Source: Vitrella brassicaformis CCMP3155 (lineage: Eukaryota > Protista > Chromerida). From it: a DNA stretch of 64,000 nucleotides. Positions within the stretch are counted from its first letter, which is position 1. Every line of letters begins with the position of its first letter. The notes beneath the pieces were generated by a model. That model saw nothing but the letters and a program-made list of their open reading frames with translations, was not told where the DNA came from and did not search any database. The position numbers and the translations under genes were made by a program. Location: NCBI GenBank assembly GCA_001179505.1, contig CDMY01000425.1, positions 1 to 64,000 of the forward strand, given 5' to 3'. Below, piece after piece: positions 32,313 through 39,552 of this stretch.

Positions 32313-32829
32313 AGAGCAGTTACTCGACACGGACAACGACACAGACAGACGATGTGTGCAGCTGGTTGGTGCGACCGGTGTTTTCGTGGCGTGGTGTGGA
32401 TATTCGTGAGTGGCTGACTCACTAGCTGACAGACTCACTGACTGACTGATCATGACTGGCTGGGCCCGTGGCTGGGTGTGCATACGTTCCTGCGCTTCTT
32501 GTGCTTCATGCTAATTCATCAGCTGCCATGTGCGTGATGCGACCCAGACAGCACAGAGTCAAGTTCATTGCACGACCAGTATCAGTGCGCCAACGGCCAA
32601 GCCTACCGCCCAACGACCTCGTTCACACACTGTAGGAGCGGATCGACACGCTTACGAAGTGAATTTACAGATCGATCGGAATCGCGCTGCCATTTTTCTG
32701 TTTTTTCCTCGGTCAGTTCGCTCGTCTGCTTCGGTTCCTTGTCTCGCTCGGCTTAGACTGATATTTCTGCTGAGTGATTGACTGAAGGCGTCCGTCCGTC
32801 CCTCACTCATTGCTTTGCTTGTTGGTGAG

Positions 32830-35800
32830 ATGACGGATCCGAGCGGTGCGGTGGTGCGTCCTTCCTTCTGTTCACTGGGCAATTCGGTCGACGCCCACAC
32901 CAACCTGTTCAACCTCAAGGTGGACGAGTCGGTCAAGATCCAGGTGTACGCCGTCAACATCACGCCGCCCATCACCAATGTCAGCGAGGTGCGCAAGGTC
33001 ATCTACAACGCCCAGGAACCGGTACTGTGACACACACGCACACACAGAGAGGGATGATGGGATGAATGGAGGGGTGTGATGGATGGTGTGATGTGGTGTG
33101 GTGTGTGCAGATTCTGAACGCGTTGGTTGCTGATGGTGCGAAGGTCGGGGCCATTCTGCATCAGGGCATGAATGTTTTCGTGACCTTGCCGCACAGCCTG
33201 ACGCCCAACCAGACCGTGTCGGTCGACTCAACCATCCAGGGCAACTCGCAGACGGTAAATAAGTGACACACACTCACACAGACAGATCGACGGGAGGGGA
33301 GGTTGGGGATGGATGGATCGGCCCATCCGGCCATGTCATTGGTGTGTGGTGTGGTGTGGTGTGCAGTTTTCGGTTCAGTTGGCGTTCAAGCACGACCTGG
33401 TGCTGCGCGGTGACGACTTGTCGCAGGAGGCCATCCAGTACATGAACGTAGCCCTCAAGAAGGCTCTGGTGAGTCGGTGACCCACACCAACCACATCACA
33501 TACACACACATGAATATCTCTCCTGTTTTTGTGTGTGTGTGTGTGTGTATGTATGTGTTTCAGGGCCAGCTGCACATGGACTTCATCGGGCGTCACGGGT
33601 TCCTCACCAACATGTGCAGCGAGCGTGCGCCCGAGCAGCTCAGCAGAGTCAAGTACGGGCCCAACAATAGCAAAGAGATGCTCCTGCTCCCAGGTGACAC
33701 ACACACACACACACAGATGGATGGATGGATGGATGTGTTGTCTTGGTTTGCTTGGTTGGTTGTCAGGTTACTTCACGTCCATCCAGCAGATTGGCAAGTC
33801 CCTCTACCTCCAGGCCGACCTCACGCACCGCATAGTCCACAACGAGACGCTGCTCGCCGTCATCCAAAACGAGCAGGTTTAATCAACACACCACACCACA
33901 CTCATCCTTCCATCCCATCATCCCTCTGTGTGTGTGTGTGTGGGTAATGCAGCGAGGTTTCAGTCGAACGGGAACGTTGACCTTCGAAGAACACATCAAC
34001 GATAAGTACAAGGGCCGTCGCGTCATGACTCATACGTACGCACGCACAAAGTGCACACACACACACACACACACACGTCTGTCCGTGTGTTTGTATGTGT
34101 GTGTGCAGGAGTCGGGGCCTGCCAACAACCGCAGCAGATCGCTCTACTGCATCGACAGAGTAGAGCACACCACACCCAGCGAGACAGCACACACACGGCA
34201 ATTCACTTGTCTCTCTCTCTCTCTGTGTGTGTGTGTCTATGTGTGTGCCAGATTGAGTTTGACGAGACGCCTGAGACCAAGTTCGTCGATTCGAGCGGCA
34301 ACGAGACCTCCATAGCCGAGTACCTCCTGACTCGTTATGGGGTCGAGTGCCAGCCCCGCCAGCCACTCGGTCAGTCTGTCAGTCTGTCAGTCTGTCAGTG
34401 TGACCCACACACACGTCTGTCTGTCTGTCTGTCTGTCTGTGTGTGTGTGCAGTTGTATCTGAGCGTCGCAAGAAGGTCACCAACAGCGAGGGGAAGCGTG
34501 AGGAGGTCGTCATCCGCACCATCAAACTCCCCGTGCAGTGCGTCACGCTGACCGGACTCGACGAGTGAGTGTGTGACCCCCTCCCACAGACCCACACACA
34601 CGCACACACACACACACACACACATCGCGGGCTGTCTGGCATCGCATCCCTCTCTGTGTCTCTGTGTATGGTCAGTACGATTCGCAACGACCACTTGATC
34701 AACGATCTAGTTGGCAAATCGTGCAGAATGACTCCTGGTGGGCGAGAGAGACCACACGCACACACACGCAGAGAGAGAGAGGCCACATCTATCCATCTCA
34801 TGGATGAATATGTGTGTGTGTGTGTGTGTGTGTAGACGATCGTCTGAAGCGTGCTCATCGGTTCGTCGAGGTGCTGCGTGACAATCCCAACGCCAAGGCC
34901 GTGCTGGACCGCTTCAAGCTCGAGATATGCGACGCCAAGGAGAAAGTCACGGGCAGAAAGCTCAACGACGGAGACAACGTCAACTCGTTCCGCGTACACC
35001 CACACCGCACCCACACACTCACACACACAGCGCCACAGACACGTGTGTGTGTGTGTGTGGTCAGTACTACGACCGCCCCAACACGCTCGAGACGCTGAAG
35101 GCGCCGAGGAAGGGCAAGAACGAGGACACACTCAAGAACAGTCAGCGACACAGCCACACACATGGATGGATGGATGGATTGGTGGGTCTGTGTGTGTGTG
35201 TCAACCATTTACAAGGTGGCAATGCTTTGCGCGGCGACTCGTTCAACTTCATTCCCAAGGGCTGCCTCAAGCCTATCAAGCTCGAGAAGTGGGTTGTGCT
35301 GGCCGACAAGAGCGACGCCCAACAAGCGCAGAAAATGGCGCGTGACATCTACAATGCTGCATGTGGTGTGTGTCCACACACACGCCCACCAAGCCCACTC
35401 ATCTCATGTGTGTGTGTGTGTGTGGATGTGTGTGTGTTTAGCACTCGGCATGGGCGACTGGGAGGCGCCCAAGTGGCTGATCAACCAGTCGCTGAGCGCC
35501 ATGTTGGCCGACCACCAGACCCTCGTCAAGGAAATCAGCGGAGCGCAGTGCGTGGTCTGCCTCCTCCCCAACTCCAAAGGGAAGACAACAAGCGTCACAC
35601 AACTCTACAACGTATGTAACCAAACCACAGCACACACACACCACAGACACACACACAGAGAGAGAGAGAGAGAGAAACGACGCGACTGTGTGCGTGTGTG
35701 CGTGTGTGTGTTTAGGGGTTGAAGCAGCTGCTGACGTGCGAGGGCAGCCAGTGTGCGTGTGTGGCGCAGTGCGTGCAGAGCAAGACGCTGGCCAGCAACA

Positions 35801-37084
35801 AGTGGCAAACAGCCTGTCAAAAGGTCGTCCAGCAGGTCAGGTCAACCAACACACACATCCATCCATCCATGTGTGTGTGTGTGTGTGTCTGTGTGTAGAT
35901 CGTGTGCAAGGTGGGCGGCGCTGCGTGGGGGCTCAACGTCAAGGGGCGCAAGCCCTTGATGGCCATCGGCGTCGACTCGCGCAAGAGCAAAGGTCAGTCA
36001 GTGAGTCGAGGCCACACAAACAAAGGACAGAGACAGACAGACACGTGTGTGTGTGTGTGTGCAGATTCGACGATCGTGTCGCTGTGTGCAACGGTCGACG
36101 ACCTTTTCATCGAGCACTTCACAAGTAAACCACACACAGCCGCACACACCCCTCTCCCTCTCCCTCTCTGTCTGTCTGTGTGTGTGTGTGAAAACAGTGT
36201 CGCAGGTGTACTCGTCTGAGATGGACCTGGCCGGAGCATTCACCAACTTCATCTCTCGTATCCACACACATCACAAGCCCACACATCACATCCACAGTGC
36301 ATCTCTCTCTCTGTGCATATAATCAAATCAGGTGCGTGTGAGACGTTCGAGCAGCGCAACAACATCGGCGTCAAGCGCATCGTCATATATCGGACGGGCC
36401 TGGGCGAGGGGCAGAAGGTCGCTGCAACCGAGTACGAGATTCCCGCCATCAAGACCGGCCTCGAGCAGGCCTGCGGCGACAAGCAACCAGAGCTCGCCGT
36501 CATACTCACCACACAACAGACCAACACCGGGCACACACACACACACACACGGGCACACGGAGAGAGCGAGGGAGAGGGAGAGAGACACCAACGTGACTCT
36601 CTCTGTGTGTGTGTGTAGGTTCGCCACGGCAAAAGGCAACCAGCTGTCCAACCCCCCGCCCCTCTCCGTCTTCGACAAAGGTAAATCAGCGAGTGGGGGC
36701 TGAGGTGACTGCTGTGTGTGAGTGGAGTGTGTGGGTGGATTGCAATCAGGTGTTGCCGACGACGCTCTGTACGTCTGGTACGGCTGCCATCAGCAGGTCA
36801 CGAGCGGCACCATCACACCCACCAAGTGAATGACCACCACACACACACAGACACACAGACAGAGAGGCGGAGAGACACGCTCTGTGTGTGTGTGTGTGTG
36901 TTTGCTCTGCCTGTGTGTGTGGAACCAAACAAACAAACAGGTATGAGGTGCTGCACATGGATCGCTGGGGCCTCGACGTCGACCAAACAATCAACCTGAC
37001 CATGCAGCTCAGCACCATGTACCAAAACTGGAGCGGTCAGCAACCAACCAATCAATCAGTGCCACACACAGACACACACACACC

Positions 37085-37119
<35 letters not shown>

Positions 37120-37258
37120 TGTGAATGTCTATCGGTCAGGTCCGATTCGTGTGCCAGCGGTGGTCAAGATGGCCGAGGTGTGTGCTCGCAAGGTGGCTGA
37201 GAATCTGCAGCTCAAGACGCCCACAGACGCCCTCGCCACCTTCCCCTGGTACCTCTGA
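32830..37258 (+). CDS. PIWI: PIWI-clade Argonaute (N-PAZ-MID-PIWI), about 23 exons, predicted slicer-inactive
   Basis: PAZ: YCIDRIEFDETPETKF...LPVQCVTLTGL. MID: LYNGLK...AQCV...CKVGG. PIWI: MAIGVD, RIVIYRTG, GTITPTKY, YQNWSGPIRVPA and C-terminal WYL*. Confidence 0.92.
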
Positions 37259-37553
37259 GCCTGAGCCAGCTGCCCTCACACAGACAGACCGACCGACTGA
37301 CACAGACAGACAGTCTGAGACTGTAGAGTAGATCGAGGAGTAGACGACACACTGACTGACTGGATTCATGGACAAATTCATGTTGACTGAATGAATGGCC
37401 GGATGGCGATGTGAGGCAAATCGGATCTCAATCCATCCATTCATCACTCAGACGAGTCCGCACATATCCATCCATTCATCGCACGAACTCGCAGAGGAAA
37501 CACACGCCGATATCCAGTCCACAAACACGCCACACAATCTCTCTCTCTCTCTC

Positions 37554-37598
<45 letters not shown>

Positions 37599-37768
37599 AG
37601 GCCGACGAGCCAATTGGCGCTCTGCGCCGCCCAGCGCAACAAACAGCGCGAGCCACCACAGCCAGAACCACCAACCACCAGGTACCTAGACCACACCGAC
37701 GACCTACGAAAAAGGGTCTCTCTCCCCGCCAGCACCAAACGACAAATACACGCCTCCCTTCAATTCCA

Positions 37769-39552
37769 TCACACTACTCTATCTACGGGCTCGGTCACTT
37801 GCCAAGCCATCATCTCCCCTTCCCCTCCCTCCCTCATGACGATGTGATAGTTCCTCTCCCTATATCTGCCGGGCAGCCTCTTCCTCGACAGCGTCGTGTC
37901 CATGTGCAGATGCTTCCGCAGAAGAATGTGCGGGGGCAGCTGCAGGGCATCGGGGTCGGCCGTGATGATTTCGCTACTGCCGTTGTGGCTGTGGGTGTGG
38001 GGGAAGGACTCATGTCTGCCTTGGGCGATCATCTCGAGCAGCGCGCAGTAGCAGGCGGGCGTGTAGTGGTGCGGGAACCTCGGCAGAGCCGCCAGCTCCT
38101 GAAACGGACACCACAGACAGACAGACAGACAGACAGAAAGCAGGCACATGCGAACACCCGTGTGTGTGAGTATCTGTGCAATCAATCAACTATATATACC
38201 GCATGCGAGACCTGCCCCTTGAGGACGGCGATTATAGCCTTGGCCTGCACCTCCATGCAGAAGAAGAACCCGCCGGTCCCAAATGGCAGCCCCACGAAGA
38301 ACAGGCTGGCTGGGTGGCTCTTGTGGAACACGTGCAGGTGGAGGGCGTCAAACAGGCACTGTGGGTCATCCGCTGTGCCCGACGGGATCAGCCCGCTCCC
38401 GGGAGCGAAGAACGGGAAATCTGAATGTCGTACGTACAACACAACACCACAATAAATAATAGTGTGCCGTGCCGCAGTGGCCTGCTCGTTTGTACCCACC
38501 ATACCGTATGTGTATCCCGTCGCCCATATGACGGCATCGATTGTGTCGGTGCTGGTGACCAGCCGCCCGTCGCTCCCCACGCTGATGTACCGGCCGTCCT
38601 CCTCGACACCTTCAGTGCGGCCCACCAAACGCACGTTGGCTGGCAGCTTGGCCGCTAGGTCAGCCGCTGTGTCGGCGTCTGTGAATTGCGTGCCCGACCA
38701 CACAACGGTAGTCGCGACGCTGCTGAGCTCCCACACCAAATCTGCCACACACGAGAGGAGGGACAGGGAAAGAACGACCTAGATGGACAGGCGCCTCTGA
38801 TATGACTGTGGGAGGTTCATTCACGTATGGGCGTACCCGATCCCGACCAGCTGCCGCCGACCACAAGCACCCGCTGGTTGGCGTATGCTGACGGCTCGCG
38901 GTAGTATTTCGAGTGCGTAGACGGCCCACGAAACCCCATCTTTATCAGTCTCGGATACCGCGGCTTGTTGTAACGCCCATTCGCCACCACTAGAGCGTCG
39001 TACAGCCGCTCCTCGCCGTTGATCCGCCAGCCGCCCTCCACCGCTGCGCCTTCCCTGCCAGCTGCCACGTACTCGGCTGAGTGGACAGTCGTGTTGAAGG
39101 CAATCGAGTCACGGAGGGCGAAGCGGTCGGCGTATGCCTGCAGGTAGCTGAGCACGTCTGTGTGCTTGATGAAGGAGGGCAGGGATGGGTCGAAGGGGAC
39201 GTCGCTGAAGCCCATGATCTCCTTGGGTATGTTGGTGCTAAGCGAATCATACATGACCGAGCGGTCGCCGTACACCCATATGCCGCCGACCTGACCCAAT
39301 GACTCCAAGACGCGCACAGCGAAGCCGGCGTCACGGAGATGCCGGGCTGCCACAAGCCCACCTGCAACAGGCAAAGAAAGATACAGACAACACGACACGG
39401 GCAGACAAACAATTCCAGAGCATACCTGCTCCGGCGCCAATCACGGCGACACTCTTCCGATGGTCAATCACATCAATGGATTGGGCCACAAGGGCAAGAA
39501 TTGAATGCCTCGCAGAAGCGGCGGTTTGGCTCGTGCGCTCCTCCTCTTCCAT
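37769..39552 (-). CDS. Flavin-containing monooxygenase (class B, FMO-like)
   Basis: VAVIGAGAGGL (FAD), VGGIW, MYDSLSTNIPKEIMGFSD, VANGRY, THSKYYREP (FMO-identifying), VVGGSWSGSD (NADPH) and WATGY. Confidence 0.92.

Follow-up and report, generated by a model that had tools for sequence, protein, structure and literature searches.

Does a Piwi gene of the chromerid Vitrella brassicaformis CCMP3155 encode a protein that still holds a guide RNA but has lost the ability to cut the target? This question is raised by a locus at positions 32830–37258 (+) of the window, by which we mean the whole stretch of DNA that was analysed, 64,000 nucleotides (nt) of contig CDMY01000425.1 (C425). An earlier note on this DNA had proposed here a PIWI-clade Argonaute of an apicomplexan relative, with an intact guide pocket and a broken slicer tetrad. 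The product encoded at this position is CEM11784.1 / A0A0G4FF04 (842 amino acids (aa), Vitrella brassicaformis CCMP3155), which is already deposited under the unnamed title 'Piwi domain-containing protein' and does come from a relative of the Apicomplexa. With a probability of about two in three, we regard it as the intact PIWI-clade gene of a slicer-inactive, guide-loaded protein, which would silence by recruiting other factors and would use guides made by RNA-dependent RNA polymerase (RdRP) and Dicer.

The longest exon includes the equivalent of the YRDG motif; a profile built from it led to CEM11784.1 in a search against 1.84 billion representative proteins. The coding region consists of 23 exons with 2529 nt (842 codons and the stop), and each exon translates to a successive stretch of the deposited protein (Table 1). 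This match was checked exon by exon, without joining, and the full-length searches used the deposited sequence. Among the introns 21 are GT-AG and one, intron 19, is GC-AG; the spacers between the short open stretches on the + strand are CA/TG-rich. Single exons were recognised by Pfam in only two of ten cases, and the last exon alone had no match in a search of the PDB. The absence of an N-terminal tail rich in arginine-glycine (RG) repeats, claimed before, is real, as the first 60 residues contain no RG or RGG repeat of the Tudor-docking type that carries symmetric dimethylarginine. It is unlikely that a coding exon was missed further upstream, because an in-frame stop is located at 32779–32781, 17 codons upstream of the ATG at 32830, and because similarity to the paralogues starts only about 100 nt upstream of this ATG.

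The central observation concerns the catalytic site. In a HMMER alignment to the solved PIWIL1, Asp614 falls on the first Asp, Thr681 on the Asp of YRDG and Glu816 on the His of YAH, and an alignment of 27 sequences agrees with these assignments. At the glutamate finger, the conserved column is occupied by Asp649, and a Glu (Glu647) precedes it by two residues. The tetrad therefore reads Asp614, Asp649 (Glu647 nearby), Thr681, Glu816 in place of D-E-D-H, and is not the D-E-D-H/D of slicer-competent proteins. All three residue readings of the earlier note were correct: the first Asp is kept within GVD, YRDG has become YRTG and the final His has become Glu within KMAEVCA. A chance or mis-splicing artefact was considered for Thr681 and Glu816 and rejected, as both are located deep within exons and are identical in the three close copies of the gene described below. 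In the MID domain, Tyr547, Lys551, Gln566 and Lys592 align with the 5'-phosphate pocket of PIWIL1 and with all reference rows, in agreement with the motifs pointed out previously (LYN|GLK, across an intron, AQCV and CKVGG); this pocket is kept.

The second Asp is the metal-bridging ligand in RNase-H-type sites. With this Asp replaced by Thr and the His by Glu, an RNase-H-type two-metal site cannot be built, and from the established chemistry of RNase H and Argonaute we infer that the protein would be inactive as a slicer, or nearly so. A kept guide pocket together with two replaced tetrad positions makes a non-cleaving, guide-binding Piwi, as predicted from the sequence by the earlier note, the natural reading.

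Searches within the organism's own genome (72.7 Mb, 1064 contigs) place this gene in a larger family. At least nine Piwi loci were found. Besides three close copies (on C425, on C227 and on C413 together with C282), there are more distant members at C537, C309, C319, C227b, C786 (P0004), C964 (P0160) and C189, and a divergent one at C531. The tetrad is degenerate in the loci that were read, which extends the proposed loss of the site from one gene to its paralogues. Position 1 is D at C309 and C227b, A at C537 and E at C319, C786 and C964. Position 3 is T in the three close copies, S at C537, C at C227b and G at C786, C964 and probably C319; only the divergent C531 has D. Position 4 is E at each family locus readable there, and appears to be Ala in C531. 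Taken together, positions 1/3/4 read D/T/E in the C425 gene, E/G/E at C786 and C964, A/S/E at C537 and D/C/E at C227b. Exon-level searches with the canonical PIWIL1 and with Phytophthora AGO1 did not enlarge this set or reveal a locus of AGO type, the one with Phytophthora AGO1 matching only a Piwi-like locus; at this sensitivity both are weak negatives.

The C531 locus (~281400–283400, minus strand) deserves a separate remark. It reads IVIYRDG, and hence keeps Asp at position 3, and PAPLMYAAKL near position 4, which would be Ala unless an intron intervenes.

The altered site might still give weak or conditional slicing if the carboxylate of the Glu at position 4 serves as a ligand in the way that the Asp does in Argonautes with DEDD. 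This possibility gains from the fact that other Argonautes work with DEDD as their tetrad, and from the carboxylate present at position 4 in each family locus readable there. Furthermore, coccidian Argonautes with E/S/E are reported to have weak Mg-dependent slicing, in a statement of PMC9935688 that cites Musiyenko 2012. However, apart from the divergent C531, each family member that was read has T, S, C or G in place of the metal-bridging second Asp, whereas 142 of the best 150 database matches have Asp at this position, and the strong cleavage seen with the Toxoplasma Argonaute TgAGO is assigned to recruited Tudor-SN (PMC9935688). We therefore consider residual slicing unlikely.

The gene is part of a segment of ~6.8 kb that exists in three copies, on C425, on C227 (~628.9–633.7 kb, minus strand) and on C413 together with C282; the genes are ~90% identical, and partial further copies are found on C456, C690 and C362. 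Nucleotide identity is higher in exons than in introns, with 94.4 vs 88.9% for the C227 copy and 90.9 vs 84.6% for the C413 copy. The ratio of nonsynonymous to synonymous substitutions (dN/dS, Nei-Gojobori), calculated from pooled exon codons, is 0.24 between the window gene and the C227 copy, 0.45 between the window gene and the C413 copy and 0.46 for the remaining pair, and stop codons do not occur. Because of these ratios in the absence of stops, and because exons are more conserved than introns, all three copies are under purifying selection.

With so many copies and partial copies, the C425 gene could be a duplicate that is redundant, expressed only weakly or in decay, with the working protein coming from another copy. 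One residue also speaks for this. The degenerate basic motif QQTNTG|F, which had been noticed before, can now be defined more precisely, since its Gly726 is specific to this copy and both close paralogues have Arg in this place. The codon is split by intron 19 as GG|G (36529–36530 and 36619) and reads AG|G in the two close paralogues, where A in place of G at 36529 yields the conserved Arg. Nevertheless, the splice sites of the 23 exons are usable and the frame stays open across them, the comparison with the C227 copy gives a dN/dS of 0.24 and exons are the better conserved part, so that such a state of this copy seems improbable to us. A pseudogene was likewise mostly rejected, on the open frame, the usable splice sites and the dN/dS of 0.24–0.46.

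Some details of the copies should be recorded. The third copy is split: exons 1–4 are at the extreme end of C282 (135823–136555), and the remainder, from the middle of exon 5, begins at base 1 of C413 (1–3916). C282 and C413 are probably adjacent in the genome. Within the C413 copy, the intron equivalent to intron 18 of the window gene contains a stretch of N, and the deposited model of this copy (P0159) is partial. So is that of the C227 copy, CEL95475.1 (478 aa), which omits the conserved glutamate-finger exon. This exon is present in the C227 DNA (~629900–630000) with 91% identity, and its omission from CEL95475.1 is likely an annotation error.

The protein belongs to the PIWI clade and is not of AGO type, as had been claimed. 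In Pfam, the deposited sequence matches Piwi at E = 2.8e-44 and, within the same chain, PAZ at E = 6.6e-8, values far from what chance would give. Solved PIWI proteins (PIWIL1, Piwi-A, Drosophila Piwi, Siwi, PIWIL2) match with 131–183 bits (E 1e-37 to 1e-52), compared to 54 bits for HrAgo1 and 31–36 bits for human AGO1–4 (AGO2: ~36 bits, E ~3e-8). The PIWI hallmarks are found where they had been located, NWSG|PIRVPA across the last intron and the C-terminal WYL directly before the stop. The ESM Atlas model of the exact sequence is confident (predicted template modelling score 0.81) and has the N-PAZ-MID-PIWI fold. By template modelling score (TM) its neighbours are PIWIL1 and Aubergine clusters with 0.80–0.84, the value of 0.84 to PIWIL1 clusters extending over ~759 of 842 residues, and AGO2 clusters follow with 0.75–0.77. 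Used whole in a word search, the deposited protein recovered four Vitrella proteins only. With the PIWI domain of the paralogue P0004 (C786), 60 non-Vitrella proteins were obtained at 29–38% identity; all names informative about the clade were piwi-like, Ago3, Siwi, Aubergine or piwi A, and none of the 60 was an AGO-clade or apicomplexan protein. Toxoplasma or Chromera orthologues were not encountered among the best 150 of the representative search, in the word search or among the cluster names.

A maximum likelihood tree of 26 rows and 775 columns was calculated with IQ-TREE under the site-heterogeneous model LG+C20+F+G4, in its posterior mean site frequency (PMSF) form. Four Vitrella proteins group with ciliate (Blepharisma), Stygamoeba and animal PIWIs, and a branch of length 1.63 with 100/100 support divides this PIWI side from the AGO rows of Rozella, Phytophthora and basidiomycetes in this tree, which does not contain TgAGO. 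It is very improbable that the Vitrella family instead forms a lineage of its own, alveolate or apicomplexan and fast-evolving ('PIWI-Api', together with TgAGO), that is drawn to the PIWIs by shared motifs or long branches: its stem is long (1.51), the tree program warned that long branches meet and TgAGO, with similar substitutions, is placed weakly with an AGO-like group (PMC2877743, PMC9935688), but the scores differ widely and consistently (183 vs 36 bits), the C-terminus and motifs are of PIWI type, the structural neighbours and all named word-search matches are PIWI, and the split from the AGO rows is fully supported under a site-heterogeneous model.

Several points weigh against an intact Piwi that binds guides and does not cut. 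TgAGO, with E/S/E, has weak Mg-dependent cleavage as cited in PMC9935688, so that a degenerate site does not prove zero activity. Gly726, which in this copy alone replaces the conserved Arg of the NT-R-F motif, could weaken contacts to the guide or its backbone. Intron 19 has to be spliced from a GC donor, and among the proteins obtained by word search none derived from a transcript of the C425 copy. As to the tree, its rows were picked by similarity to a Vitrella exon and include few AGO rows, and the position of the long-stemmed Vitrella group within the PIWI side is unsettled.

How does this protein compare to known systems? Animal PIWIs (PIWIL1/MIWI, Siwi, Drosophila Piwi, Ephydatia Piwi-A) have the four-domain fold and the 5'-phosphate pocket in common with it, give the best matches in sequence and in structure and share both the NW.G.IRVPA motif and a hydrophobic C-terminus of the form (Y/F/W)(Y/F)L. 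However, identity in the PIWI domain is only 30–38% (paralogue P0004). Where the animal proteins have D-E-D-H, the Vitrella protein has D-D/E-T-E; their KR..TRF is degenerate here (QQTNTGF), and the N-terminal RG/RA tail for Tudor docking is lacking. Unlike animals, Vitrella is single-celled and has RdRP genes in its genome.

The ciliate Piwis (Tetrahymena Twi1–12, Paramecium Ptiwi) represent an alveolate, expanded and PIWI-only-looking Argonaute repertoire, as is found in Vitrella. The ciliate (Blepharisma) protein stands on the same side of the tree, which does not resolve a sister relation to ciliates. Loss of tetrad residues appears to be family-wide in Vitrella, whereas it is limited to some members in ciliates. 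Unlike ciliates, Vitrella is not known to have nuclear dimorphism or DNA elimination.

The coccidian Argonautes, TgAGO among them, come from the sister lineage Apicomplexa. TgAGO has kept the MID pocket and lacks the catalytic triad (PMC2877743), and coccidian Argonautes including TgAGO have E/S/E at the D/D/H positions (PMC9935688). Compared by published residues, this is similar, not identical, to D/T/E, E/G/E, A/S/E and D/C/E in Vitrella. TgAGO associates with Tudor-SN and polysomes (PMC2877743, PMC9935688). It is encoded by a single-copy gene and has an RGG N-terminal tail, which the Vitrella protein lacks. Other inactive Argonautes, such as human AGO1/AGO4 and the WAGOs of Caenorhabditis elegans, bind guides and do not slice; they belong to other clades, and the likeness is one in mode of action only. 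The nematode WAGOs are an expanded family which works with RdRP products, and the non-cutting family of Vitrella alongside its RdRPs recalls them.

Partner genes are present in the genome. RdRP (PF05183) is encoded at no fewer than four loci, on C246, C91, C338 and C379, and RNase III at four loci; a CHHC zinc finger of the GTSF1 type gave one weak match. The contig C246 carries two RdRP loci ~70 kb apart. In ciliates, Twi proteins receive small RNAs made by Dicer and RdRP, whose complexes load them, and Twi12 functions without slicing, via Xrn2 (PMC5340916). By this analogy, and since RdRP and RNase III genes exist in the genome, the guides would probably be made by RdRP and Dicer and not by the animal-type piRNA route, in which the RNAs of 24–31 nt are Dicer-independent and 2'-O-methylated. 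Most likely the Vitrella protein would load small RNAs with a 5'-monophosphate via the kept MID pocket, and complementary RNAs or loci would be silenced without cutting by the protein itself, through recruited factors; these might be repressors that act on chromatin or on translation, or a nuclease distinct from the protein. For the 'piRNA-like' pathway suggested earlier, if taken in the animal sense, no test made here provided support.

Taken alone, this gene is one more non-cutting Argonaute, and an already deposited one; slicer-deficient Argonautes are well known, TgAGO included (PMC2877743, PMC9935688). More useful is the picture of the family: a photosynthetic relative of the Apicomplexa has a large Piwi-only-looking repertoire with the cutting site degenerate throughout and with substitutions similar in pattern to those in the one Argonaute of Toxoplasma. 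In the literature searched, no study of chromerid Argonautes or Piwis was found. The pattern shared by the Vitrella family and coccidians, in which position 4 is Glu and position 3 is taken by a small residue, suggests, without proving it, one ancestral loss before the split of chromerids and Apicomplexa. A more far-reaching version is possible, yet rather doubtful in our view: this site would be the ancestral state of chromerids and coccidians, TgAGO would be derived within a PIWI-type family, and silencing free of slicing, with cleavage by recruited nucleases, would have existed before parasitism. If true, Vitrella would represent a free-living, expanded version of that system, with at least nine genes and several RdRPs. 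With the picture of the family it becomes testable whether the ancestor of the Apicomplexa, while still free-living, had already given up slicing and left cleavage to partner nucleases.

Table 1. Features of the Piwi locus and its duplicated surroundings, in positions of the window
Feature	Position	Strand	Content
Duplicated segment	32730–39548		gene and ~2.3 kb downstream; 83–91% nt identity to copies on C227 and C413+C282
Coding region	32830–37258	+	23 exons, equal to CEM11784.1
Exon 1	32830–33021	+	aa 1–64, N domain, start ATG, no RG tail
Exon 2	33111–33254	+	aa 65–112
Exon 3	33367–33468	+	aa 113–146
Exon 4	33564–33693	+	aa 147–190
Exon 5	33767–33876	+	aa 190–226, linker L1
Exon 6	33953–34021	+	aa 227–249, PAZ start
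Exon 7	34109–34159	+	aa 250–266, PAZ
Exon 8	34252–34369	+	aa 267–306, PAZ core; alone gives Pfam PAZ E = 0.0012
Exon 9	34453–34564	+	aa 306–343, PAZ end
Exon 10	34676–34737	+	aa 343–364
Exon 11	34836–34993	+	aa 364–416, linker L2
Exon 12	35065–35140	+	aa 417–442
Exon 13	35216–35365	+	aa 442–492, MID
Exon 14	35442–35611	+	aa 492–548, MID; Tyr547 at 35606–35608
Exon 15	35716–35835	+	aa 549–588; Lys551 at 35722–35724, Gln566 at 35767–35769
Exon 16	35899–35992	+	aa 589–620; Lys592 at 35908–35910; tetrad position 1, Asp614 at 35974–35976
Exon 17	36065–36124	+	aa 620–640
Exon 18	36198–36257	+	aa 640–660, glutamate-finger loop; Glu647 at 36218–36220, Asp649 at 36224–36226
Exon 19	36332–36530	+	aa 660–726; tetrad position 3, Thr681 at 36394–36396 (YRTG); GC donor at end
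Intron 19	36531–36618	+	sole GC-AG intron; common to the three close copies
Exon 20	36619–36680	+	aa 726–747
Exon 21	36750–36825	+	aa 747–772
Exon 22	36941–37035	+	aa 772–804
Exon 23	37140–37258	+	aa 804–842; tetrad position 4, Glu816 at 37175–37177 (KMAEV); WYL; stop 37256–37258

The donor of intron 19 reads GG|GCACAC. An in-frame GT donor is not present there, and the exons downstream are 89–100% identical in protein between the copies.

Downstream of the gene, a minus-strand open reading frame at 38182–38748 (188 aa) resembles part of a gene of the flavin-monooxygenase type. It is included in the duplicated flank of ~2.3 kb (37259–39548); therefore, this neighbour was copied along with the Piwi gene.

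The introns themselves show a peculiar composition. About 20 of the 22 (33022–37139) are AC/CA-rich in the 5' half and GT/TG-rich in the 3' half; in the intron at 34160–34251, for instance, AC/CA occurs 21 times in the 5' half and once in the 3' half, and GT/TG once and 21 times, respectively. Due to this arrangement the two ends of an intron can pair. The minimum free energies of folding are –15 to –48 kcal/mol for 63–115 nt. Bridging introns of the type (AC)n...(GT)n have been described in teleost fish, and the Vitrella Piwi introns recall them.

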